From Saccharolobus islandicus REY15A (GTDB lineage Archaea; Thermoproteota; Thermoprotei_A; Sulfolobales; Sulfolobaceae), in assembly GCF_000189555.1 (NCBI RefSeq), contig NC_017276.1: a stretch of 64,000 nucleotides of DNA, one strand, 5' to 3'. The notes beneath the pieces are model-generated. The model did no database searches, was not told the DNA's origin, and saw nothing but the letters and a program-made list of their open reading frames with translations. Both the position numbers and the translations under genes were made by a program. Of this stretch, positions 28,834 through 44,678 are shown piece by piece (position 1 is the stretch's first letter; each line of letters opens with the position of its first letter).

Positions 28834-29520
28834 TTAGCTATCCTTTCTTTCCTCTTCTTGCTGCGATATGTTGTTAATTACATTGTAGAATTTTAGGTCG
28901 TCAATATATCGTTTAATTATTCTCGACTCAGCTGATCTTAAATGGTACGTGAAAGTGGATTTACTTATATTTATCAATTTAGATATTTTATCAGACTTAA
29001 TTCTCCTGGGAAAATCAAAATAGCCATTTTTATAAGCCAAAATTAAAGTTTTAAGTTCATATGGAGTCAGTTCATCCTCAGTTACATTTAATTCGTGAGA
29101 GCCAATAAACTCCACATTCCCTTTAGACCTAAGCTTCTCCCTTAATTCATTAATGTAACTTTCATACAATAAAATTCGCCAATATTCCTTTCCATCATAC
29201 TTAAATCCATCTAAGATTATCCCATCTACGGAGTTTATAATGTCCATTACACTATTTTTGTACCTCTTTCTGAAATCAAAAAGTATTTTCTTATTGTCAT
29301 TTGTGAGAGAAATTGATGAGTATCCAATGAAACTATTATTTCTTTTTATCTTATTCATTAAATCCTTGTATTTTTTATCCACAACGATTAGGGACCTAAT
29401 AGAGTTCCTCTCAGTATCTACAGAAAATCTCAAAGTTTTCACAATGTATTTACCAACTAGATTAGTCCAACAGTTCTCATGTTCAACTGAAAACGTAATT
29501 TCCAATAGTCTGTCATTCAT
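28834..29520 (-). CDS. Bacterio-opsin-activator-type (HTH_10) transcriptional regulator
   Basis: C-terminal LTPYELKTLILAYKNGYFDFPRRI...STFTYHLRSAE. Confidence 0.88.
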   Translation of the reverse strand: MNDRLLEITFSVEHENCWTNLVGKYIVKTLRFSVDTERNSIRSLIVVDKKYKDLMNKIKRNNSFIGYSSISLTNDNKKILFDFRKRYKNSVMDIINSVDGIILDGFKYDGKEYWRILLYESYINELREKLRSKGNVEFIGSHELNVTEDELTPYELKTLILAYKNGYFDFPRRIKSDKISKLINISKSTFTYHLRSAESRIIKRYIDDLKFYNVINNISQQEEERKDS

Positions 29521-29703: not shown

Positions 29704-29715
29704 TCAAACATGTTA
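29704..29715 (+). promoter_or_regulatory. ARA-box-like operator 2 (TCAAACATGTTA)
   Basis: Core ends 40 nt before ATG 29754. Confidence 0.75.
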
Positions 29716-31055: not shown

Positions 31056-31685
31056 AGTCGAGGAGAGTAATACTCTCCTCGACTGGGGAAACATGGTCGA
31101 TATACCAACTGAAGCAAAGTCTTCGGAGTGTGGCGTGACTAACCCCTACCGTCGGACTGAAAATTGTGATAAAATTCACGAATATAGGATGATTGAGGGG
31201 CAAGTACCAGATAACCACGTTTTATTAACAATCCCGGGTGTTGGGAGGCTTGCAGCTGGGGTTATTATTGGTATTGTTGGCGATATTAGGCGCTTTCCTA
31301 AACCAGAATCATTTGTTGCTTATTGTGGTCTTGATCCTCTTGTTGAAAGGAGTGGAAAGGCTGTGATAAGTAAGGGTATTTCGAAGAGGGGTAATAAGTA
31401 CTTGCGTAGTTTGTTTTACTTTTTGGCAGGGAGGAATTATTCTAGGAACCCAACATTGTTGAAGTTTTATGAAGCGCACAAGGATAGGCTTCAAGGTAAG
31501 AAGTTATTCACTGCCTTGGCTAGGAAGTTGGCTAGGATTGTTTGGAGTGTTTGGTATAATAATAGGCCTTATGAGCCTAAATAGGTGAACCCTTCCCCCG
31601 AATCGCCACGTGGGTTGAAAGGACCCACGTGGCAATCTTAGCTAATACTATGCTTGAAGTTTGACTGAAAGATTTATTACTGAAC
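31056..31685 (+). mobile_element. Internally deleted IS110-family element
   Basis: Only the C-terminal transposase half remains (TIPGVG, YCGLDP, SG, KRGNKYLR, ALARKLARI); structured non-coding flanks; boundaries approximate. Confidence 0.75.
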
Positions 31686-31877
31686 GCCCCATTTTCTTTA
31701 ATCTCCTCAAGCTTTAGAGTTAGCGAGGTGTGGAGAGGTGAAGGAGAGGTGATATTAAACGGTTCAATAAATGAGGAGCTTGAAGTTTTGAAGGTAAACA
31801 AGATTGAGGGAGGGTATTACTTCAATTGGTCATTTAAGCAATTAGGAGCAAAGATCCTATCTAGGATTTCGAAATAA
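31686..31877 (+). pseudogene. C-terminal remnant of an acetoacetate-decarboxylase-family paralog
   Basis: SEVWRGEGEVILNGSINEELEVLKVNKIEGGYYFNWSFK aligns by eye with [39 protein letters not shown] of the next gene. Confidence 0.65.
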
Positions 31878-34500: not shown

Positions 34501-34512
34501 TCAAACTTGTTA
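34501..34512 (+). promoter_or_regulatory. ARA-box-like operator 6 (TCAAACTTGTTA)
   Basis: Core ends 48 nt before ATG 34559; CTTAATAT follows. Confidence 0.65.
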
Positions 34513-34558: not shown

Positions 34559-35773
<1,215 letters not shown>

Positions 35774-35849
35774 GTGTGGGCTGAATCCTTTTTCACGTTA
35801 ATATAGAAATCTTTTTATATTTGAGTATGTTAAAATTTTATTTATTAAG

Positions 35850-36040
35850 GATGATCTCTCATGCCGATGTGGGCTATGCCCAAAAGGGTGAGGGGGATTA
35901 CGGAGATATGAGCCCCGTGCCGTTGGGCTCAAAGGAGTCCCATGATCCACCTACCATAAGTAGGTGGTTGAGGGCTAAGTCCCTACACTCGATCATGAAT
36001 GAATATAAAATGAGTGAAATGAAAGTGTAGGGACAAACGG
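35850..36040 (+). mobile_element. Right-end remnant of an IS607-family element (tnpB tail / omega-RNA region)
   Basis: GC-rich with three stems (35909-35931, 35947-35967, 35979-35989 with 36024-36034), ends AAACGG; peptide resembles Sulfolobus IS607 TnpB tails (recall). Confidence 0.6.
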
Positions 36041-36058
36041 ATAAAGTTACTTCTTTTT

Positions 36059-36070
36059 TCGAACATGTTT
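36059..36070 (+). promoter_or_regulatory. ARA-box-like operator 7 (TCGAACATGTTT)
   Basis: Core ends 40 nt before ATG 36109; TTTTTATATA follows. Confidence 0.75.
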
Positions 36071-36108
36071 AAGAATTATTTTTATATACGAATGATACAC
36101 ACCTACTT

Positions 36109-36915
36109 ATGAAACCAGTTCCTGCAGAACCTAAACTACCATCAAGAGATGAGTATTATGATTTGGCGAACAAGCTAGAGTGGGCACCGAAATACGTAAA
36201 AGAAGAAGAACTATTTCCAGTAGATATGAGTGGAATACCGAATTTACCGATAGACGTATGGGCCGAGTTATATGATGCCCCCTATAAGGTGACATATAGG
36301 GAGTATGTAAAGAATCAAAAGGAGAAAGATCAAAGACTTTTCTCGGTAAGAGAGGCTGGAGTAAGAGCAGAGTTAGTAAAGAAATTGGATAAGACATATC
36401 ATCAAGGCTCCTTCTGTTTCCATATAACTGCGGTTCCTATACCAGAATATACTGCGTCTATAGCAGAAGCAAGGATGGCGAGGTTTGGGAAAGCCGGTGA
36501 ATGGAGAAACTTATCCACATTCGGTTCTATGGATGAGGTAAGACACGCACAAGTGCAAATCTTATTATCTCATGATAGTATACAAGCTAGTCCTAAGTTC
36601 GCCTATGCACATAAGATGTTCTGGGTTGACGGCTGGTTACCAATAGCAGCTAGATCGTTCTTTGACGATACTATTACTGGGACTAATGCAATAGAATTCG
36701 CCTTAATGACTACCTTTGCATTTGAGACTGGATTTACCAATTTACAATTTGTAGCATATGCCGCAATGGCAAATAAGACTAATGATTTCGTGTTTTCCTC
36801 AACAACTCAGAGTATACAGACTGATGAATCTAGGCACGCACAAATAGGGCACCCAGTTCTAAAGACCTTTGTTGACGTGACAAAGTTGAATGAAGAGATG
36901 AAAAAGAAAATTTAA
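36109..36915 (+). CDS. tmoA: Aromatic monooxygenase alpha subunit, N-terminal half (diiron four-helix bundle)
   Basis: All six ligands present: PEY, DEVRH, FETG, DESRH. Confidence 0.9.
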   Translation: MKPVPAEPKLPSRDEYYDLANKLEWAPKYVKEEELFPVDMSGIPNLPIDVWAELYDAPYKVTYREYVKNQKEKDQRLFSVREAGVRAELVKKLDKTYHQGSFCFHITAVPIPEYTASIAEARMARFGKAGEWRNLSTFGSMDEVRHAQVQILLSHDSIQASPKFAYAHKMFWVDGWLPIAARSFFDDTITGTNAIEFALMTTFAFETGFTNLQFVAYAAMANKTNDFVFSSTTQSIQTDESRHAQIGHPVLKTFVDVTKLNEEMKKKI

Positions 36916-36940
36916 TTTATTTTTTAATTTTTTTCCTTTG
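36913..36940 (+). terminator. T-rich archaeal terminator-like tract after tmoA-N
   Basis: TAATTTATTTTTTAATTTTTTCCTTT directly after the stop. Confidence 0.5.
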
Positions 36941-37089
36941 TACCTTACTCTTTTTAAAGACACCTCATATGAGTAGGATTTAAAAACTATAAACTGTAAA
37001 CATTAGTAATTCCACAAAGTTCTTATTCGTTTGGATATCATAAAATAAGAAGTAATAATACAAAAACTTACTGGGAGTACTAATGTTTA

Positions 37090-37101
37090 TCAAACTTGTT
37101 A
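37090..37101 (+). promoter_or_regulatory. ARA-box-like operator 8 (TCAAACTTGTTA)
   Basis: Core ends 37/40 nt before ATG 37137/37140; CTTAAAAA follows. Confidence 0.75.
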
Positions 37102-37136
37102 GAACAATTCTTAAAAAGTATAAAAAAGACTAACTG

Positions 37137-38072
37137 ATGATGAGTAGAGAGGGAGGTTTAGGTCAAACTAAGGGAGAGGTCAAGCAAGCCTTATCTAATG
37201 TCTCAGAAGGACTAATGAAAAATTATAGAAACACTGTTGAATTTGCTGTTAGAATGAGAGAAAAAGGTCCAGCATATAAAGAGGCAGGAGAATATTTAAT
37301 AGCGAAAGGATTCTGGCTATCCCTTAGGCTAATAGGAGCATTAACTGGAGTTTCTATGGATTACCTCACTCCACTAGACGCTAGAATAATGTCGTACAAG
37401 GAGTTTATAACAGAATGGGTAGGTGCCCAATTTAAGAGATTACTAGAAGATTATGGGATAAGATTACCTTGGTACTGGCAGTGGTTTGAATTAGAGTTAG
37501 ATCATTGGCATCATAACTTTATTATAGGATTATATACGTGGAGAAGGACTCTAAATGTCGCATTTAGAGGTCCAACGCCTGATGAGAGAAAATGGTTAAA
37601 CGAGAAATACCCACACTGGGAGAAGTTTTTCGGAAGAGTTTGGGACTTATACATAAAGAAGATAATTGATGGACAAATACCATTACCATTAACTGCAGTA
37701 CATTTATGTACAGTTTGTCAGGTACCAATACAAGCACCTGTAAACGGAAAGTACTTAAGAATCTACTTAAAAGAGTACAAGGGAAAGATATATACGTTTG
37801 ATAGTCCAGCATGCTTATGGATTTTTGAACAAGAACCAGATAGATATGCTGGAAGAAGGACTTACACGCAAAGAGTACTTGAGGGGATGATACAGTTTAC
37901 TGAAGAGGCATACAAGGATCCTAAGAGACTACTTGAAGAGGTAATATGGAATATGGGACAAACGGAAGAAGGGGAGGCTGGTCTAGACCCTACTGATGGT
38001 GCTTATGCCCTATTATATAAAGAGAAAGATCCAGATTTCTATAATAGGATAAAGAAATATACGGAGGGGTAA
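37137..38072 (+). CDS. tmoA: Aromatic monooxygenase alpha subunit, C-terminal half, with novel ~45-aa N-terminus
   Basis: TGVSMDYLTPL..SYKEFITEW, PWYW, EKYPHW, and YHS-like CTVCQVP...FDSPAC. Confidence 0.88.
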   Translation: MMSREGGLGQTKGEVKQALSNVSEGLMKNYRNTVEFAVRMREKGPAYKEAGEYLIAKGFWLSLRLIGALTGVSMDYLTPLDARIMSYKEFITEWVGAQFKRLLEDYGIRLPWYWQWFELELDHWHHNFIIGLYTWRRTLNVAFRGPTPDERKWLNEKYPHWEKFFGRVWDLYIKKIIDGQIPLPLTAVHLCTVCQVPIQAPVNGKYLRIYLKEYKGKIYTFDSPACLWIFEQEPDRYAGRRTYTQRVLEGMIQFTEEAYKDPKRLLEEVIWNMGQTEEGEAGLDPTDGAYALLYKEKDPDFYNRIKKYTEG

Positions 38073-38077
38073 AGAAA

Positions 38078-38512
38078 ATGAGTATGGAAGCAGTGCCAAT
38101 AATATTCGTCCCAGAAGAAGGCACAGTGTGGTTACCCGCTGTACTTCCAACAAACATTACGGTAAAAGAGGCTATTGAAATGTTGAAGAGTCTAACAGTA
38201 AACGTGTTAGTATGGGAAAAGAAGGATAAGGACTTAAGATTAGTTAACTACTTTACTGGTCAAGTCTTAGATCTTAATGCCAAAGTTAGAGACGTAATAA
38301 AGCCATATGACGTTTTCTGGTTAGTCTGGTGGCCTCCTAAGGAAGAGTTCTGGAAGCCAGAGAATCAGAACGATGATATATTCAAGATTATAAAGGAGAC
38401 TGAAGAGGCTATAAAGTTAGCCCCAAGATCTCCTTCAGTACTATTTGCAGATGAGATTGAAAAATATAGTATCGTTAGAAGATTGGAAAGGGAGGGTAAA
38501 TTAAGGGCGTGA
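38078..38512 (+). CDS. tmoB: Monooxygenase gamma subunit (TmoB-like) with C-terminal extension
   Basis: Position after the alpha subunit; beta-grasp-like pattern. Confidence 0.6.
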   Translation: MSMEAVPIIFVPEEGTVWLPAVLPTNITVKEAIEMLKSLTVNVLVWEKKDKDLRLVNYFTGQVLDLNAKVRDVIKPYDVFWLVWWPPKEEFWKPENQNDDIFKIIKETEEAIKLAPRSPSVLFADEIEKYSIVRRLEREGKLRA

Positions 38513-38516
38513 GACT

Positions 38517-38921
38517 ATGAGTTATCCTGGAGAATTCCATAAAGTGCTAACACTAGACGATATTTATGAAGGTGAGGCTAAGTTAGTAGAGGTCAATAGA
38601 TACGAAATTCTAGTAGTCAATATGAATGGAGAAATAAAGGCGTATTATGCAAGGTGTGCCCACGCATTAGGTTTAATAGAGCCAAATTCTTTTGACGGTG
38701 AGGAGAAAATCATATGCCCAGTACATTTATGGGAGTATAATGCAAGGACAGGAGAGAGCATAAATCCTGAGGGAAGTTCCCTCTTTCCATTGGATGTGAA
38801 GGTTGAAGGTAATGACATTTTTGTTAAAGTTCCGTCTGTTCCCGTTTCCGAGTTCAAGGTTAAATGGTTTGGTATGTATAGGCAAAGAGGTGTGATAAAT
38901 GAGTTTGGAGTTAACTCTTGA
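38517..38921 (+). CDS. tmoC: Rieske ferredoxin
   Basis: CAH...CPVHLWEY. Confidence 0.9.
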   Translation: MSYPGEFHKVLTLDDIYEGEAKLVEVNRYEILVVNMNGEIKAYYARCAHALGLIEPNSFDGEEKIICPVHLWEYNARTGESINPEGSSLFPLDVKVEGNDIFVKVPSVPVSEFKVKWFGMYRQRGVINEFGVNS

Positions 38922-39246
38922 ATCAATTTTAGATAAATATCAAATAACAGATTTAAGTAAATTATCACAAAATATTGTAGGTCCAGTACTTACGAAAGAT
39001 GAGTTCAGCTACGGTGTAGTTGAAGCTATAGCGGGTGATAATCCAAATACTTTCAAAGGAGTTATCGACAGAGGCTCATACATAAGAATAGTGGGTGAAA
39101 GGGAACTTGTTTTAAACAAAAGTACGTTAGAGGAAGTGCTGGGTAGAGAAGTTAGATTTCCAGGAGAGGTTGAGGTAAGGATGAGTGCATTTGCAGGAAA
39201 GATCATTGTAAGAGGGGATTATCTAAAATGGTATTTGGAGTTATGA
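38899..39246 (+). CDS. tmoD: Monooxygenase effector protein
   Basis: VGPVL...DRGSYIRI...FPGEVEVRMSAFAGKI (MmoB/DmpM family). Confidence 0.88.
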   Translation: MSLELTLESILDKYQITDLSKLSQNIVGPVLTKDEFSYGVVEAIAGDNPNTFKGVIDRGSYIRIVGERELVLNKSTLEEVLGREVRFPGEVEVRMSAFAGKIIVRGDYLKWYLEL

Positions 39247-39247
39247 G

Positions 39248-40390
39248 GTGAAAAAGGTTATGACTAGATTAGAGGATTTGGAATGGTATAGAAGGTATAA
39301 ACAAATGTTCGGAGCGTTCAAAAGTGGAGTAGAAGGTGATCGGTTTTTCAGAGATTATGAATATAGGGGGTACAAAAGAGTCTGGTCAACTTGGCCGATG
39401 CTAGAGAAGAAACTAGGAAGGAAAAAGCCATCGGAATATCAAATAGTCACCTATGCATTGTCATACTGGGCGGATCCAAGATCCCCTACTTACATCTATG
39501 ATAAGGGACCATTTGAACTAGGGACAGAGCATATAACTCAAAAATGGTATAAACACTTTAGAGACAACTCACCATTCATTAAGCCATTATTCGAAAGAGG
39601 AGAATGGCATGACTATGAAGATCCATACAAACTTACATATTGGACCTACAACTCCATGGCAGATGATAATGAAACCTTTTTAGATAAGATATATGAGGAA
39701 ATTGTAAATACTAAATACGATTGGAACCTAAGTGAGGAGGTACTGGAGTTATACAAGAACGTTTACGATCCATTAAGGTATGTATTCCACATCATGCAAA
39801 TGGAGTCAATGTATCTAGCTAGTATGGCTCCTACAAGTTCTATAACTAACGTATTCATATTTATGGGAATGGACCACATGAGAAGAGTCCAAAGAATTGC
39901 ACAAAGAGTAAAGATGCTAGATATTATATATCCAAGCTTAGGATTTGGAAAGGAAGCGAGAAAGATATTTGAGGAGAGTCCACTATTTCAACCAACAAGA
40001 GAAGTATTGGAGAAAATGTTAGCTACATATGATGTAGGAGAAAGCTTAGTAGCGTTTAACTTAGCGGTCAAATTCGTATTAGATGAGCTAATACTCCAAC
40101 ATCTAACGCAACAATTCAGTAAAATGGGGGATGAGATGATTAGGCACATTCACATGTCGTTCTATAACGATACATTAAGGCATAGACACCAAGCTCAAGA
40201 ACTGTTCAAATACGCTTTTAGTAAGGAACCAAGCTTAAAAGACGTTATCAAACCTTGGCTAAAGGATTGGCAAGAGATGGCATTTAAGGCTACAGAAGGG
40301 TTTAGGGATGTGCTCAAAGGAGAATATGATAATACTATAAAGCAGATCAAGAAGGCTCATAGTGAATATCTTGGAGGAATAGGTTTATGA
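39248..40390 (+). CDS. tmoE: Monooxygenase beta subunit
   Basis: KPSEYQIVT, YEDP..LTYWTY, RRVQRIA and DTLRHR motifs. Confidence 0.85.
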   Translation: MKKVMTRLEDLEWYRRYKQMFGAFKSGVEGDRFFRDYEYRGYKRVWSTWPMLEKKLGRKKPSEYQIVTYALSYWADPRSPTYIYDKGPFELGTEHITQKWYKHFRDNSPFIKPLFERGEWHDYEDPYKLTYWTYNSMADDNETFLDKIYEEIVNTKYDWNLSEEVLELYKNVYDPLRYVFHIMQMESMYLASMAPTSSITNVFIFMGMDHMRRVQRIAQRVKMLDIIYPSLGFGKEARKIFEESPLFQPTREVLEKMLATYDVGESLVAFNLAVKFVLDELILQHLTQQFSKMGDEMIRHIHMSFYNDTLRHRHQAQELFKYAFSKEPSLKDVIKPWLKDWQEMAFKATEGFRDVLKGEYDNTIKQIKKAHSEYLGGIGL

Positions 40391-40872
40391 AAGATAAGAT
40401 TAAAGATAAGATTGTGGAAATTTTAAGGCAAATTTACGATCCAGAGATTCCAATAAATATATATGACTTAGGACTAGTAAGAGAGATAAAAGTTGAAGAC
40501 AATAGGGTTTTTGTTAGATTAATTTTCACTGCTAATAAGGGGTGTACCTTAGCAGATCTTATGGCAGTTCAAGTTAAGTATAAACTAATGAAGGCGTTTC
40601 CAGACTATAACGTGGAAGTCAAGAGTGATTTTAACGAAGAATGGAATATAGGCTATGCAACAGAAACGGGTAGGCTGATGTTAGAGGAAATATATGGAAA
40701 AGAAGCAGTGGATGCGTTAGCTAATAAGACTAAAATAGAGGAAATAGTATCGATAAATAAGGTCAGGTTAGAGGATTTCGATCCACGGGAATACATGAAA
40801 AAAGCAGTGGATGAGAGATATAAGAGATTTAAGGAATGGTACGATAAACACAATATATTGATTTCTCATTGA
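40387..40872 (+). CDS. DUF59/MIP18 metal-cluster assembly protein
   Basis: LRQIYDPEIPINIYDLGLV...TANKGC. Confidence 0.88.
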   Translation: MKDKIKDKIVEILRQIYDPEIPINIYDLGLVREIKVEDNRVFVRLIFTANKGCTLADLMAVQVKYKLMKAFPDYNVEVKSDFNEEWNIGYATETGRLMLEEIYGKEAVDALANKTKIEEIVSINKVRLEDFDPREYMKKAVDERYKRFKEWYDKHNILISH

Positions 40873-40961
40873 TAATAACGTTCCTTTTCATCTAAAATAT
40901 TTATAAAACGTGGTCTTCAAGTGTCAAAACACTTTTTATGCGTGTGAAATCATTAATATTC

Positions 40962-42611
40962 ATGAATGGTTCAAAACTTCTCTTGACTCTGTTAAAGGAT
41001 TATGACGTTAAACACATATTTGGTTTACCGGGCGAATCCTCAATATCATTATATGATCAACTTAAAGAAGGCGAAGTACTACACATAATCACTAGAGATG
41101 AGAGAAACGCAGTTTACATGGCTGACACATACGCAAAGCTAACTTATAAACCTGGAGTTGCTGAAGGCCCAAGTGTTGGTTCAATATATATGCTCCCTGG
41201 AGTTGCTGAAGCGTATAAGTCATCTACACCGTTAATAGTAATAACTACTGATACACCATTATACGGAGAGAAGGAGAATTATTTGACCGCATTAGATCAA
41301 GCTTCCCTATTTAGACCGATAACTAAGGAAACTATAACAGTGTATAATGTTGAGGAATTACCTCATGCTATAAGGAGAGCATTCAGATTAAGTACTAGTG
41401 GAAAACCTGGACCAGTTCACATTAGAATACCCCTAGATGTTTTAGAAGATGAATTGAAAGGCAACGTTGAACTTAAAGCCCAAAAGGAGTTCTCGAAATA
41501 TCCATCTCAAAGACCTTTAGCGGATCGTGAAATGATAAGGAAAGCCGTAGATTTAATTTTGAAGAGTGAATTTCCAGTAATAATTTGCGGTCAAGGAGCA
41601 CTTTACTCAATGGCGTGGGATGAGGTAACTGAATTAGCTGAGTTATTAGGAATTCTTGTGGGGACTACAATAACTGGTAAGGGTTGTATTCCAGAAACCC
41701 ATCCCTTGTCAATAGGTGTGGTTGGCGGTAGGGGCGGTGCAAATTTTTCGAACAGTATTGTAGATAAATCAGACCTTGTAATTCTCATAGGGAGTAATAC
41801 GGATTCAGCAAATACTTATAACTGGACTATACCATCCAGAGGCAAAACCGTAATTCATATTGACATTAGCGAGACTGAGACTGGGAATAATTACGATAGT
41901 ATAAACCTCATAGGGGATGCTAAAGTAACATTGAGGGAGTTGATTAAGGAAATTAAAGGTAGTGGAAAAATTGATAAAAAGAACATTATTTTAGATAGAA
42001 GTGCATTCGAAGATAGGCTTAGTAAGGAGAGGAGAGAAGCAGTAAACCCGTTACGTTTCATAAAGGAACTTTGGAGTCTATCACCTGAAGAGGCTGTATT
42101 AATAGCTGATCCCGGAGTTAGCGCAATCTACACTGCTGCTTTCTATAAGGCCAAAAAAGTTGGTAGGTATTTCATTTTTAACTATGGTCTAGGTGGTCTT
42201 GGCTATTCAATTCCAGCATCTGTAGGTGCTTATTTTGCAAGGCCTAACTCTTTGATTTTCTCTCTTTCTGGAGATGGGAGTTTCGGTTTCTCAGCTGGTG
42301 AACTAGAGACCATAAGGAGAGTCAATGCTAATGTGGTTATTATAATCTTTAATAATGGAAGTTACGGTTGGATAAGGGCTGAAATGAAAGCTAGGGGTAA
42401 GGACATTGTTGGAACTGATTTTTCAAGTCCAGATTACGTTAAGATCGCTGAAGGGTATGGACTATCCGCGTATGGGATAACCAATGATGAAGAGATATCT
42501 GATACGTTAAAGAGGGCTATAAAGAATACTCCTTCTTTAGTTGAGGTTATTGTTGAGCCAGAGGATAAGTTCGTCCCTCCGGTTATGCCTTGGAGTAAGA
42601 GATTTCTTTAA
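40962..42611 (+). CDS. Thiamine-diphosphate enzyme (acetolactate-synthase-like fold)
   Basis: FGLPGE, TRDE, GPVH and GDGSFG...FNNGSYG motifs. Confidence 0.88.
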   Translation: MNGSKLLLTLLKDYDVKHIFGLPGESSISLYDQLKEGEVLHIITRDERNAVYMADTYAKLTYKPGVAEGPSVGSIYMLPGVAEAYKSSTPLIVITTDTPLYGEKENYLTALDQASLFRPITKETITVYNVEELPHAIRRAFRLSTSGKPGPVHIRIPLDVLEDELKGNVELKAQKEFSKYPSQRPLADREMIRKAVDLILKSEFPVIICGQGALYSMAWDEVTELAELLGILVGTTITGKGCIPETHPLSIGVVGGRGGANFSNSIVDKSDLVILIGSNTDSANTYNWTIPSRGKTVIHIDISETETGNNYDSINLIGDAKVTLRELIKEIKGSGKIDKKNIILDRSAFEDRLSKERREAVNPLRFIKELWSLSPEEAVLIADPGVSAIYTAAFYKAKKVGRYFIFNYGLGGLGYSIPASVGAYFARPNSLIFSLSGDGSFGFSAGELETIRRVNANVVIIIFNNGSYGWIRAEMKARGKDIVGTDFSSPDYVKIAEGYGLSAYGITNDEEISDTLKRAIKNTPSLVEVIVEPEDKFVPPVMPWSKRFL

Positions 42612-42992: not shown

Positions 42993-44678
42993 CTACGTAT
43001 ATAAAGCCTCACCTTTGGATAGTTTTATAGCTACGTCTACAGTTATCTTACTCCTCCTATTAGTAGGACTATGTGCTGATAAATATCTTACTGTGGCTAT
43101 CATGGGAACGTAATTCTCATCGTATTCTTTTAGGGCATTAAATAACGATATTCCAGCATCCACTGTCTGAGCGGTATGAAAACTAACATCTTCTATAAAT
43201 AAAGACCTAATAATTGTTTTAATTAGCGTATCTTCTGGGAATTCTCTAATTAAATAATCATAAACATCTAGAGATGCCTCTTCGATTCTTTTAGAACCTA
43301 TAGCTTCACTCAGTGATTTTATTATTTCTTCTTCATTTCTCGACGTTTTCTCTTTAGGGAGTCTTGCTGGAGGAATATTAAGAAACCTTGTTAAGTAAAG
43401 ATTTCCTACACCATGATAAATTCCTCTAATCAGGTAAAAACTCTCTTTTCTCTCAAAGAGTCTATATAAAGCGTTAGAATATACGAATTGATGATGTACT
43501 GTTTCCCAATCTGAGAAATCATTTTGAGTGTGAAATCTAGCTTCTCTATATGCGGAAGCTAAACCCAAGGCTAAGGCTAAATATTTTGGGGAAGCGTTAG
43601 AGGCTATAGTTTGAGTTACACATTCAAAGGGTTTCTTTGGATCGTCTTGTAGTAAACAATTTACAAGATTATCCATCTCCTTTTGATCGAGCCTTTCTTT
43701 CCCTATTTTCATGTCCTGTGCTTTACTTATTTCACTGTTTATTATACTCACAAGATCGTCCGGTATCCTCCATTTTGGATCTTCTTCATGTCTCATAGCG
43801 TTAGCCAATTGACTAATTAAAGATGCAAAAATTAACCTGGAATTATCCCATCCTATCTTATCTAACAATTCAGTTTCCTTATTTAAATGATCTAGTATAT
43901 GTCCTTCGTCCAAGAAAAAGTGGTCAGTAACTGAAGCTATCATGGCGTCAAGTCCATCTTCGCTTCTCATGCTAATTATTGCTCTTCTGGCAGGATTAAC
44001 TTCCCTTCCTTCTATAAATTCTCTAAACCAATTTTTTAAATTATCAGCATTTTCTAATGGTTCTGGATAGATTACTTTTGGCCTTTCGAAAATTTGTGAA
44101 GAGACGTTTTTAATACCATGTAAAAGGCCCAAGATCCTCCATTCTAATTCAAGGTCATAATTAAGCAAATTAAGTATTATTGTAAAAATATTTAGACCGC
44201 TATTCCATTCATGATCTCTAAGTACGTGAATAGAAACTTCCTTAGCTAAGTCATTTAAGGAAATTCCATTATTTAATAAGTCTATAATAGATTTTGCTAT
44301 AACAAGGTCTATATCATGATCTATTCCTTTTCTTAATCTTTTAACTGCATGATCTTTAACGTCTCTTTCCTTAAAATTTACTATAACTTTATCGTTAACT
44401 ATCTTAGTTTCATAAGTAGTGAGATCGTCTGCCCATAAATCGAATGTCCCACCGTCATTTAAGTTGAACCTAGCATGATGCCAATGGCAAATGAGTATTC
44501 CATCCCTTATTGTTCCTTTAGATAATGGATATCCCATATGTGGACATCTTATATCGCATGCGTATACATTTCCCTTATCGTAAATTATTAGGACATTAAT
44601 TCCGTTTTTATTTATCACGACCGTTCCTTTATCTTTTACCTCTTTCAGAGGTACAGTTATGATTCTTAAATCTTCCAT
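42993..44678 (-). CDS. Rieske [2Fe-2S] domain fused to a large unknown helical domain
   Basis: CPHMG...CHWHHARF at the N-terminus; His/Asp-rich motifs downstream. Confidence 0.8.
   Translation of the reverse strand: MEDLRIITVPLKEVKDKGTVVINKNGINVLIIYDKGNVYACDIRCPHMGYPLSKGTIRDGILICHWHHARFNLNDGGTFDLWADDLTTYETKIVNDKVIVNFKERDVKDHAVKRLRKGIDHDIDLVIAKSIIDLLNNGISLNDLAKEVSIHVLRDHEWNSGLNIFTIILNLLNYDLELEWRILGLLHGIKNVSSQIFERPKVIYPEPLENADNLKNWFREFIEGREVNPARRAIISMRSEDGLDAMIASVTDHFFLDEGHILDHLNKETELLDKIGWDNSRLIFASLISQLANAMRHEEDPKWRIPDDLVSIINSEISKAQDMKIGKERLDQKEMDNLVNCLLQDDPKKPFECVTQTIASNASPKYLALALGLASAYREARFHTQNDFSDWETVHHQFVYSNALYRLFERKESFYLIRGIYHGVGNLYLTRFLNIPPARLPKEKTSRNEEEIIKSLSEAIGSKRIEEASLDVYDYLIREFPEDTLIKTIIRSLFIEDVSFHTAQTVDAGISLFNALKEYDENYVPMIATVRYLSAHSPTNRRSKITVDVAIKLSKGEALYT

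Follow-up and report, generated by a model that had tools for sequence, protein, structure and literature searches.

A diiron monooxygenase alpha subunit encoded by two genes in Saccharolobus islandicus REY15A: a probable ancient fission kept in Sulfolobales and Pyrobaculum

The window, a stretch of 64,000 nucleotides of contig NC_017276.1 of Saccharolobus islandicus REY15A, contains a phenol island in which the alpha subunit of a soluble diiron monooxygenase is distributed over two open reading frames, referred to below as N-half and C-half. The following features are of importance for the split:

34559-35773, plus strand: FAD/NAD(P) ferredoxin reductase, TodA-like (Pyr_redox_2/Reductase_C), with its own box at 34501-34511
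36059-36069, plus strand: operator-like box TCGAACATGTT with the palindromic core AACATGTT, 50 nt upstream of the N-half ATG
36079-36089, plus strand: TATA-like element TTTTTATATAC, separated from the box by 9 nt and from the N-half ATG by 20 nt
36109-36915, plus strand: alpha N-half (A-N), 268 aa, ferritin-like diiron bundle and a new C-terminal tail of 12 residues
36916-36934, plus strand: T-rich tract TTTATTTTTTAATTTTTTT directly 3' of the N-half stop, candidate archaeal termination signal
36916-37139, plus strand: intergenic spacer of 221 or 224 bp, depending on whether the first or the second ATG is taken as the start
37088-37129, plus strand: putative C-half promoter block, with the box TCAAACTTGTT at 37090-37100 (-50 from the ATG at 37140) and the TATA-like element CTTAAAAAGTA at 37110-37120
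37140-38072, plus strand: alpha C-half (A-C), 310 aa, or 311 aa if translation starts at the alternative ATG 37137
37140-37277, plus strand: clade-specific extension, C-half codons 1-46, for which one long amphipathic helix at residues 11-40 and a subsequent Gly-Pro turn are predicted
38078-40872, plus strand: remainder of the operon headed by the C-half, with gene gaps of -23 to +5 nt
38078-38512, plus strand: B-position protein, 144 aa
38517-38921, plus strand: Rieske ferredoxin (Rieske E=2e-11)
38899-39246, plus strand: effector of the MmoB/DmpM family (MmoB_DmpM E=8.5e-23)
39248-40390, plus strand: beta subunit, paralogous to alpha (Phenol_Hydrox fold; Pfam PF02332 E=1.9e-62)
40387-40872, plus strand: DUF59/FeS_assembly_P protein, last gene of the operon

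In the N-half, the Pfam Phenol_Hydrox match covers residues 25-256 (E=4.2e-66), and residues 12-262 align by phmmer with residues 5-253 of the ToMO A chain (1t0q_A, E=1e-68). All six iron ligands (E113, E143, H146, E206, E240 and H243) are located in this frame, and as part of the two E...EXXH diiron motifs they are invariant in the split clade and in two unsplit homologues. The protein ends with RHAQIGHPVLKTFVDVTKLNEEMKKKI and a TAA stop at 36913-36915. The T-rich tract behind this stop is likely to serve as an archaeal termination signal; T-runs 3' of the N-half are also kept in S. solfataricus, where the orthologue is Sso1227. The original prediction, according to which the homology to TmoA ends after the second ligand motif and is followed by a new tail, a stop and a T-tract, with all iron ligands remaining in the first half, agrees with these data.

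The C-half, whose orthologue is Sso1228, matches ToMO A and TmoA from its residue 48, corresponding to chain residue 251 (E=1e-47), and the segment matching ToMO A residues 251-462 includes the YHS domain. It had been expected that the second frame opens with a stretch foreign to TmoA before the homology resumes. This holds true with a stretch of about 46 residues, while the start assumed at 37137 has to be corrected, probably to the second ATG at 37140. The latter is preferred since S. solfataricus carries ACG at the position of the first ATG, and since the spacing of box, TATA-like element and ATG then becomes identical to that of the N-half.

For the first ~46 residues of the C-half, no match was obtained in the PDB and none in any homologue of ~500 aa. 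Among 1.84 billion representative proteins, the extension was matched by only one other cluster (P0132, 311 aa), and all proteins of ~500 aa in this set align only from C-half residue ~47-50. Neither a homologue of the extension outside the split clade nor a fused protein carrying it, which had been named in advance as speaking against a fission, was found among these representatives. The extension has an equal length in all split lineages, and its residues E34 and A36 are invariant in 13 split sequences. AlphaFold2 predicted residues 11-40 as a single long helix with low confidence (pLDDT about 67-70). The predictions were run for each half alone with alignments of 15 sequences and gave an overall pLDDT of 57 for the C-half and 37 for the N-half; since these values are too poor for a fold search or for reasoning about an interface, only the secondary structure of the extension was used. 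Overlap duplication of the last ligand helix was also considered as the source of the extension; MAFFT placed the extension opposite this helix in unsplit proteins. This origin found no support when profiles of the extension and the N-half were compared (probability 0.65%, 6 aligned columns) or in BLASTP (E=1.5), and an apparent extension into P0211 turned out to be low-identity drift.

The spacer contains no IS ends, as claimed before, and the only repeat in it that recurs in the window is the 15-bp operator box. An Rfam scan of positions 35700-37300 resulted in sub-threshold chance matches only and in no family. A scan for promoters and terminators gave background counts only, its models being bacterial and the host archaeal. 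The promoters assigned to the two halves have a common layout, consisting of an 11-bp box, 9 nt, the TATA-like element, 20 nt and the ATG, which corresponds to the claim that the C-half possesses its own operator and TATA element at the spacing of the island. The TATA-to-start distance rule is established for Sulfolobales promoters. If the promoter assignment is correct, the TATA-to-ATG spacing points to leaderless or near-leaderless mRNAs. The position of the N-half box at -50 is also kept in S. solfataricus and Metallosphaera J1. On the side of the C-half, the suggested check of box conservation revealed that the whole promoter block is 100% identical to S. solfataricus within an otherwise indel-ridden spacer. 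For the motif TCRAACWTGTT, 18 matches with at most one mismatch were counted compared to 5.4 expected, and the five exact copies are all located inside the island at 27-37 kb.

The predicted operon A(C)-B-C-D-E-DUF59 headed by the C-half was confirmed, with closely spaced genes up to position 40872. The B-position protein showed no Pfam match and no PDB match better than E=0.32, and the TmoB (PF06234) signature was not detected in it; its gene is kept at the same position in all split loci. The TodA-like flavoprotein is the sole reductase in the island and does not correspond to the TmoF type. Canonical TmoF belongs to the FNR-like reductases and carries a plant-type [2Fe-2S] domain.

The split of the alpha subunit itself is already known and has been present in databases since the S. 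solfataricus genome. Two alpha ORFs are reportedly described by Notomista et al. 2003 (J Mol Evol 56:435) and Izzo et al. 2005 (Res Microbiol 156:677). On record are Sso1227 and Sso1228 as tmoA 'amino end fragment' and 'carboxy end fragment', as well as 'TmoA alpha beta' in S. islandicus (PMC7820114, PMC3283564). SsoMO of S. solfataricus P2 (Sso1225-Sso1234) represents the same locus with the same gene order and the identical C-half promoter block; the nucleotide identity amounts to 87-90% across the island and the protein identity to 94-95% for the two halves. The window differs from SsoMO in the length of the spacer between the halves (221 compared to 133 bp), in an insert of ~260 bp upstream of the N-half promoter and in the first ADC gene, a neighbouring gene which has been truncated by an IS element.

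Compared to TouA of Pseudomonas sp. OX1 (1T0Q) and TmoA of P. mendocina KR1 (3DHG), the homology extends over both halves and comprises the same six ligands, and the beta subunit, the Rieske ferredoxin and the MmoB/DmpM effector are shared as partners. While TouA and TmoA are single chains of ~500 aa, the alpha subunit is present here as two chains, which together gain about 55 residues around the break, and none of the members of the split clade has the one-polypeptide alpha of ~500 residues typical of TMO and ToMO. Further differences to the TouA/TmoA systems are the 144-aa B-position protein without detectable TmoB signature, the TodA-type FAD reductase and the appended DUF59 gene.

The designation of both products as end fragments in the databases, the commonness of IS elements in such genomes and the truncated ADC gene in the window would fit two decaying pieces of a broken tmoA gene. 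The distribution of the break contradicts this explanation. Break point and extension are shared by Saccharolobus, Metallosphaera, Acidianus, Sulfolobus sp. A20, Pyrobaculum and two metagenomic lineages; altogether, the break point is common to at least eight lineages and four gene arrangements, in which the halves are adjacent, on divergent strands, separated by an alcohol dehydrogenase (ADH) gene, or in reversed order, the N-half following the C-half at a distance of 6 kb. The same split and the same extension were found in Metallosphaera J1, in lineage L006/L007 and in S. solfataricus. In Sulfolobus sp. A20 the N-half is encoded on the strand opposite to the C-half, in P. arsenaticum and related contigs the ADH gene lies between the two, and in Acidianus manzaensis the N-half follows the reductase gene, 6 kb downstream from the operon of the C-half. 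Proteins comprising only the N-half are named also from A. brierleyi and Pyrobaculum MAGs. Of these genomes, the scan of genome contigs yielded Metallosphaera J1, besides a distant bacterial MAG, and the others were obtained via exact-protein look-ups. Despite sequence identities of only 50-85% and four rearrangements, break point and ORF lengths are identical across the lineages.

A comparison of the window with S. solfataricus showed a dN/dS of about 0.05 for both halves (N-half: core 0.050, tail 0.15 over 13 codons; C-half: core 0.051, tail 0.057) and of 0.041 for the extension, determined at dS values of 0.42-0.91 and, in the case of the extension, from 46 codons of one unsaturated pair. 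These values indicate strongly purifying selection on both halves as well as on the new extension and show no relaxation, which had been named in advance as speaking against a selected fission. Compared to more distant lineages, for which synonymous sites are saturated, the N-core is 71-86% identical. The extension diverges faster than the core: relative to the lineages of Pyrobaculum, L003 and L006, its identity is 24-28%, versus 54-62% for the core. Trees of both halves recover the split clade as monophyletic (100/100), and the topologies are broadly congruent. In addition, phenol strongly induces both halves in S. solfataricus P2, which is able to grow on it (PMC7820114), and no intact alpha paralogue was seen in the loci examined. 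Decay of a broken gene is hardly credible in view of these findings. Judged from the sequences, the conserved break, the survival of rearrangements and the purifying selection on both products speak for a functional gene fission. The idea of a real and maintained fission, with which the analysis started, is thus upheld by the break kept in at least eight lineages, the selection, the monophyly and the lack of a fused form among the representatives.

In principle, one alpha chain could be regenerated from both genes by readthrough or frameshifting, by cis- or trans-splicing of the mRNA (bulge-helix-bulge type, BHB) or by a split intein. Some Crenarchaeota possess a BHB intron in an mRNA. Recoded split genes exist in Sulfolobales, an example being fucA1 (PMC1616953). 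However, the spacer ranges from 133 bp in S. solfataricus via 308 bp in L006 to 708 bp in Metallosphaera J1, and the opposite strands in Sulfolobus A20, the intervening ADH gene in Pyrobaculum and the reversed order at a distance of 6 kb in Acidianus are difficult to combine with such a mechanism. In none of six lineages were the N-half 3' end and the C-half 5' end more complementary at the RNA level than expected (z-scores between -0.86 and +1.39), which argues against trans-splicing. The minimal size of an intein is far above that of the tail (12 aa) and the extension (46 aa), and inspection of the sequences by eye revealed no junction motif resembling that of an intein. Furthermore, the extension is under constraint at the protein level, and the conserved Met is located at a leaderless distance from the TATA element. 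A regenerated single chain is consequently given next to no weight.

For S. solfataricus P2, published RNA-seq data describe the response to phenol. From glucose to phenol, the RPKM increased from 369 to 26,848 for Sso1227, the N-half (PMC7820114, Table 5 and supplementary Table 3), from 9.2 to 3,515 for Sso1228, the C-half, and from 59 to 574 for the upstream reductase (PMC7820114). Accordingly, the N-half mRNA exceeded the C-half mRNA 40-fold on glucose and 7.6-fold on phenol (PMC7820114). Such an excess is not expected from a strict 1:1 complex. The operon headed by the C-half showed RPKM values of 3515, 2868, 1727, 673, 1483 and 948 on phenol (PMC7820114), which span a roughly five-fold range and tend to decrease along the operon.

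The two alpha polypeptides would originate from separate transcripts. Since the same phenol-island operator is located at -50 in both promoters, N-half and C-half are presumably co-induced, and the 8- to 40-fold excess of the N-half mRNA would reflect promoters of different strength. The original prediction of separately tunable expression holds with respect to own promoters and unequal mRNA levels. As a conserved property of the fission it does not hold, since both halves carry the same operator, the N-half of Pyrobaculum heads the same gene string and the N-half of Acidianus follows the reductase.

Within a real fission, the N-half could also, or even mainly, act on its own, for example as an independent diiron protein that interacts with different partners. 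The 40-fold and 7.6-fold mRNA excess, the agreement of the N-half with the complete Pfam Phenol_Hydrox domain and its linkage to the reductase gene instead of the hydroxylase operon in Acidianus are in line with this. However, in every locus examined the N-half is accompanied by the C-half operon at a distance of no more than a few kb, the trees of the two halves are broadly congruent, and by homology to the known enzymes of the family the alpha chain runs straight on from the Phenol_Hydrox domain. Moreover, a ratio of mRNAs need not equal a ratio of proteins. A stand-alone role is therefore considered improbable.

According to the explanation held to be very probable, a ToMO-type alpha subunit underwent a single, ancient fission, selection has preserved the split in a small thermophilic clade of Crenarchaeota (Sulfolobales and Pyrobaculum), and the two chains would reassemble. 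The break is located in a surface loop just after the helix with the last Glu-x-x-His ligands (ToMO A residue ~250), so that the first gene comprises the complete ferritin-like diiron domain; the second gene encodes the remaining helices and the C-terminal YHS-containing domain. A-N and A-C would reassociate non-covalently to an alpha-like unit, and we infer that the four chains form one hydroxylase of the composition (A-N, A-C, beta, B)2. The 46-residue amphipathic helix together with the short N-half tail may replace the lost covalent link, and as far as a predicted helix can suggest, the new termini could form the interface. The enzyme would hydroxylate phenol to catechol and thereby feed the adjacent meta-cleavage genes. 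P2 grows on phenol with the monooxygenase cluster induced, and catechol was detected (PMC7820114). Growth, catechol and induction indirectly indicate an aromatic hydroxylation by the SsoMO-type enzyme.

The fission may have been fixed by an adaptive benefit rather than neutrally. Some bacterial soluble diiron monooxygenases depend on GroEL-type helpers. A cut combined with a clamp helix might ease folding, iron loading (with the DUF59 protein) and assembly of a large hydroxylase that folds with difficulty, at about 80 degrees C and in a cell without such helpers, with the catalytic half supplied in excess from the stronger promoter; this adaptive reading is tentative and rather doubtful. If it were true, the archaeal enzyme would provide a natural blueprint for split and more easily expressed soluble diiron monooxygenases.

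Split genes with reassembling products are known from other systems. The A'/A'' and B'/B'' subunits of archaeal RNA polymerase are encoded by adjacent genes split at domain borders. Similarly, the transketolase of Carboxydothermus, one chain elsewhere, is encoded by two adjacent genes split at a domain border, the products of which reassemble (PMC7661550). In contrast to both, the genes described here are separable (opposite strands, 6 kb apart), and a new segment of 46 residues was added. Compared to the previous record, the supposed fragments appear as a conserved and selected fission of single origin common to Sulfolobales and Pyrobaculum, with two alpha genes that are free to separate in the genome and differ strongly in their transcript levels. 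Soluble diiron monooxygenases are prized catalysts, but notoriously hard to express and assemble outside their hosts; a natural two-piece subunit marks a cut site together with an added holding segment. A recent review kept only matches with a coverage of >80% and does not mention archaeal split enzymes (PMC11825192), and surveys of the family with a coverage filter are likely to overlook them.

Among the short C-half-like matches in the representative library, no independent fission was found. Two candidates for a second, bacterial fission were rejected, since the match L018 is a contig-end truncation and L019 is a contig of high GC content in which the alpha gene is interrupted and spread over three frames.

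A candidate for the protein binding the box (ATCAAACWTGTTAGA) is encoded by the following gene:

28834-29520, minus strand: HTH_10 transcriptional regulator, 228 aa, divergent from an ADH gene

An exact copy of the box at 29704 lies in the promoter of this ADH gene, which would be consistent with a link between regulator and box. In S. solfataricus P2, the HTH_10 regulator Sso1219 is induced 12-fold on phenol (PMC7820114), and HTH_10 genes are also present in the loci of Metallosphaera and Sulfolobus A20.

The phenol/toluene degradation island in the window has its counterpart in the Sso1218-Sso1234 region of Saccharolobus solfataricus, with a nucleotide identity of 87-90%. The alpha subunit is encoded in two pieces, which showed 94-95% protein identity between both organisms and are followed by a protein at the site of the small TmoB subunit:

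36109-36915, +, alpha N-half, 268 aa, with a complete Pfam Phenol_Hydrox domain (residues 25-256, E=4.2e-66)
37137/37140-38072, +, alpha C-half, 311/310 aa, including a YHS domain
38078-38512, B-position protein, 144 aa

The N-half could be aligned with residues 5-253 of the toluene/o-xylene monooxygenase (ToMO) alpha subunit (1t0q_A, E=1e-68), and all six iron ligands (E113, E143, H146, E206, E240 and H243) lie inside ORF 36109-36915. The homology stops after ...RHAQIGHPVLKTFVD, followed by 12 more residues, a TAA and a run of T-tracts. For the first ~46 residues of the C-half (the extension) no counterpart was found in solved structures, and the remainder matches residues 251-462 of the ToMO alpha subunit (E=1e-47). 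Accordingly, the break lies at ToMO A residue ~250, shortly past the last Glu-x-x-His ligand motif, and the new ends of both halves together comprise ~55 extra residues. Alignment and sequence confirmed the original description in full, including the homology stop, tail, stop codon and T-tract of the N-half, the location of the six ligands and the non-TmoA residues of the second ORF; only the start of the latter was refined, to the ATG at 37140. Since S. solfataricus has ACG at the position of the first ATG (37137), the second appears the likelier start.

In searches with each half, N-half-only proteins of 262-276 aa (66-95% identical among the matches of one search) were found in S. solfataricus, Acidianus manzaensis, A. 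brierleyi, Metallosphaera sp. J1, Pyrobaculum arsenaticum, Pyrobaculum MAGs and metagenomes. C-half-only proteins comprised 304-326 aa (50-93% identical); since they cover 96-100% of the query, they carry the extension. The genomic contexts of the split halves showed four arrangements:

Both halves on one strand, separated by a spacer of 133 bp (S. solfataricus), 221 bp (window), 308 bp (L006, a contig of unassigned lineage) or 708 bp (Metallosphaera J1)
Divergent, with the N-half and the C-half operon on opposite strands (Sulfolobus sp. A20)
N-half, alcohol dehydrogenase (ADH) gene, C-half (P. arsenaticum and contigs L011 and L003)
N-half 6 kb 3' of the C-half operon, past the reductase gene (A. 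manzaensis)

Across these arrangements the same break and extension were found in every lineage examined, in agreement with the predicted fission: the N-half stops 7-13 residues past the F-V-D motif and the C-half opens with the ~46-residue extension. In Sulfolobales the N-half tail contains a conserved L-x-K-K-I/V, and residues E34 and A36 of the extension were invariant in 13 split sequences. In the trees, each half was monophyletic (100/100) on a long stem apart from the unsplit ~500-aa proteins, and both trees were broadly congruent. A reading of the halves as pseudogene fragments is contradicted by gene order, strand and spacing across lineages. The variation of the same three features also speaks against a re-joining of the halves into one chain, for which no RNA complementarity between the ends of the halves was found and, in the case of an intein, the terminal segments fall well below the length needed. 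Because of gene order, strand and spacing, both explanations are effectively excluded.

Selection on the two halves was determined against S. solfataricus, for which synonymous sites are unsaturated (dS 0.42-0.91). The dN/dS values were 0.050 (N-core), 0.15 (13-codon tail), 0.041 (extension), 0.051 (C-core) and 0.057 (C-tail); selection is not relaxed. Compared to more distant lineages the N-core retained 71-86% identity despite saturated synonymous sites. When 1.84 billion representative proteins were searched exhaustively with HMMER, the extension was matched by just one other cluster (P0132, 311 aa), whereas every ~500-aa relative aligned only from query residue ~47-50, and no fused relative containing the extension was found among these proteins. 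Therefore, neither a fused relative with the segment nor relaxed selection, both named beforehand as speaking against the fission, was observed. The core interpretation, a maintained fission in which each half has its own promoter, is supported.

Short bacterial homologues were rejected as further splits, one being a contig-end truncation and one lying on a frameshift-ridden contig. On the high-GC metagenomic contig L019 (296-4142) the alpha gene is spread across three reading frames, and the gene calls appear to join the alpha C-part with TmoB and the beta subunit with the Rieske domain. Most likely these calls result from assembly frameshifts, which is a caution for automated split/fusion surveys.

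Both halves are preceded by the box TCRAACWTGTT, located 50 nt 5' of the ATG (36059 and 37090) and followed by 9 nt, an 11-nt AT-rich TATA-like element and 20 nt to the ATG. In Sulfolobales, such a TATA-to-start spacing implies leaderless or nearly leaderless mRNA, which would accordingly hold for both halves. With up to one mismatch the box occurs 18 times compared to 5.4 expected, and all five exact copies belong to the island, among them those before the ADH and reductase genes. While the spacer shows many indels compared to S. solfataricus, a 42-bp block with the C-half box and TATA element is 100% identical. Before the C-half, the box is found at -50/-51 in S. solfataricus and Acidianus and with one mismatch in Metallosphaera; before the N-half, it lies at -50 in S. 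solfataricus and Metallosphaera.

Nearly every transcription unit of the island has a palindromic box at its promoter (27283, 29704, 30860, 33910, 34501, 36059 and 37090; consensus about ATCAAACWTGTTAGA), which is rare in the rest of the 64 kb. The likely candidate for its binding is the island-encoded HTH_10 regulator (28834-29520, - strand), whose P2 orthologue Sso1219 showed a 12-fold induction on phenol (PMC7820114). Box and regulator form a candidate phenol regulon, which is conserved in S. solfataricus, Metallosphaera J1 and Acidianus manzaensis; none was seen in Sulfolobus A20 or Pyrobaculum. In Pyrobaculum, the N-half stop overlaps the ADH gene start, and separate promoters for the halves are not universal in the clade.

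Downstream of the C-half, the genes for the B-position protein, Rieske ferredoxin, effector, beta subunit and DUF59 protein follow operon-like with gaps of -23 to +5 nt. Published RNA-seq data of the sister strain P2, in which growth on phenol is accompanied by induction of the cluster (PMC7820114), were used for a comparison of transcript levels.

Transcript levels in S. solfataricus P2 (RPKM, glucose vs phenol; PMC7820114, supplementary Table 3)
Sso1225, reductase: 59; 574
Sso1227, alpha N-half: 369; 26,848
Sso1228, alpha C-half: 9.2; 3,515
Sso1229, B-position protein: 17.6; 2,868
Sso1230, Rieske ferredoxin: 21; 1,727
Sso1231, effector: 38; 673
Sso1233, beta subunit: 25; 1,483
Sso1234, DUF59 protein: 21; 948

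The N-half transcript exceeded its upstream neighbour 47-fold and the C-half 7.6-fold on phenol; on glucose its excess over the C-half was 40-fold. From the C-half onward, the phenol values stay within a ~five-fold range with a downward trend, as expected of a single operon. These data directly support two transcription units of unequal strength responding to the same inducer. The claims that the second half has its own operator and TATA at a common spacing, heads an operon and is expressed separately are supported by the identical box-TATA-ATG layout, by the short gene gaps and RPKM profile, and by the 7.6- to 40-fold higher N-half transcript, respectively.

The data show two genes and two transcripts, whose encoded products are conserved and complement each other in making up a known fold. 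The two chains would reassociate as the alpha-like unit of a hydroxylase with four different chains, with the extension and the N-half tail possibly acting jointly as a clamp. For the extension one helix is predicted (residues 11-40, pLDDT about 67-70) in an otherwise poor single-chain model; single-chain models of the halves were of too poor quality to use. In addition, the N-half may have a stand-alone role, which is consistent with its mRNA excess. The comparisons gave no support for an overlap duplication as the source of the extension.

By homology and partner genes the system is of the ToMO type, from which it differs in the divided alpha subunit, the unrecognisable B-position subunit and a reductase of TodA-type instead of TmoF-type. 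The split itself is already known and was reportedly described in papers of 2003 and 2005 on the S. solfataricus cluster. The P2 annotation names the halves amino-end and carboxy-end fragments (PMC7820114), and a population-genomics paper on S. islandicus lists "TmoA alpha beta" among six subunits (PMC3283564). A family survey of 2025 considered only matches with >80% coverage and is silent on archaeal enzymes (PMC11825192). In the literature searched, no paper was found that shows how the split is conserved in Sulfolobales and Pyrobaculum, how its gene order was shuffled, the selection values or the unequal expression of the halves.

For the B-position protein neither a Pfam family nor a PDB relative was found (best E=0.32), and every split-alpha locus examined has a protein of 126-150 aa (134 aa in one gene call) conserved at this position. 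The protein may represent a replacement specific to this clade or a gamma subunit diverged past recognition. In the YHS domain (37704-37817, C-half residues 189-226) the cysteine pattern varies by lineage: Pyrobaculum-type sequences have four Cys (C-x-x-C ... C-S-P-x-C), and in Sulfolobales the third is replaced by Asp (F-D-S-P-x-C), which suggests a changed or lost metal site.

Different lineages may supply the hydroxylase with electrons in different ways. Saccharolobus and Acidianus have a TodA-like reductase, and a fused electron-transfer-flavoprotein (ETF alpha/beta) gene encoding 589-598 aa lies directly 3' of the operon in Pyrobaculum lineages and near it in Acidianus (contigs L010, 13600-15369; L003, 11700-13469; L012, 11895-13691). 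A thiamine-diphosphate enzyme (40938-42611, 557 aa) lies 3' of the operon in the window and likewise in Metallosphaera J1, and 42993-44678 (- strand) encodes a protein of 561 aa, which combines a Rieske domain at the N-terminus with a long, uncharacterised C-terminal part.

The window contains a ~260-bp insert (about 35800-36040), located between the stop of the reductase gene and the promoter of the N-half, that is absent in S. solfataricus. Its core (35855-36015) is GC-rich within an AT-rich genome, and the predicted fold of this segment is more stable than that of shuffled sequences (-58.6 kcal/mol, z=-2.7); Rfam gave only sub-threshold matches (C/D-box snoRNA model, 27.7 bits). Possible identities of the insert are a small structured RNA and a miniature mobile element. 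Of the first of two acetoacetate-decarboxylase-like genes (Sso1221 equivalent, 31093-31871 region) only the last ~60 codons are left (31695-31871), preceded by an IS110-family transposase fragment (31093-31584), and therefore one meta-pathway gene copy has been lost in this strain.
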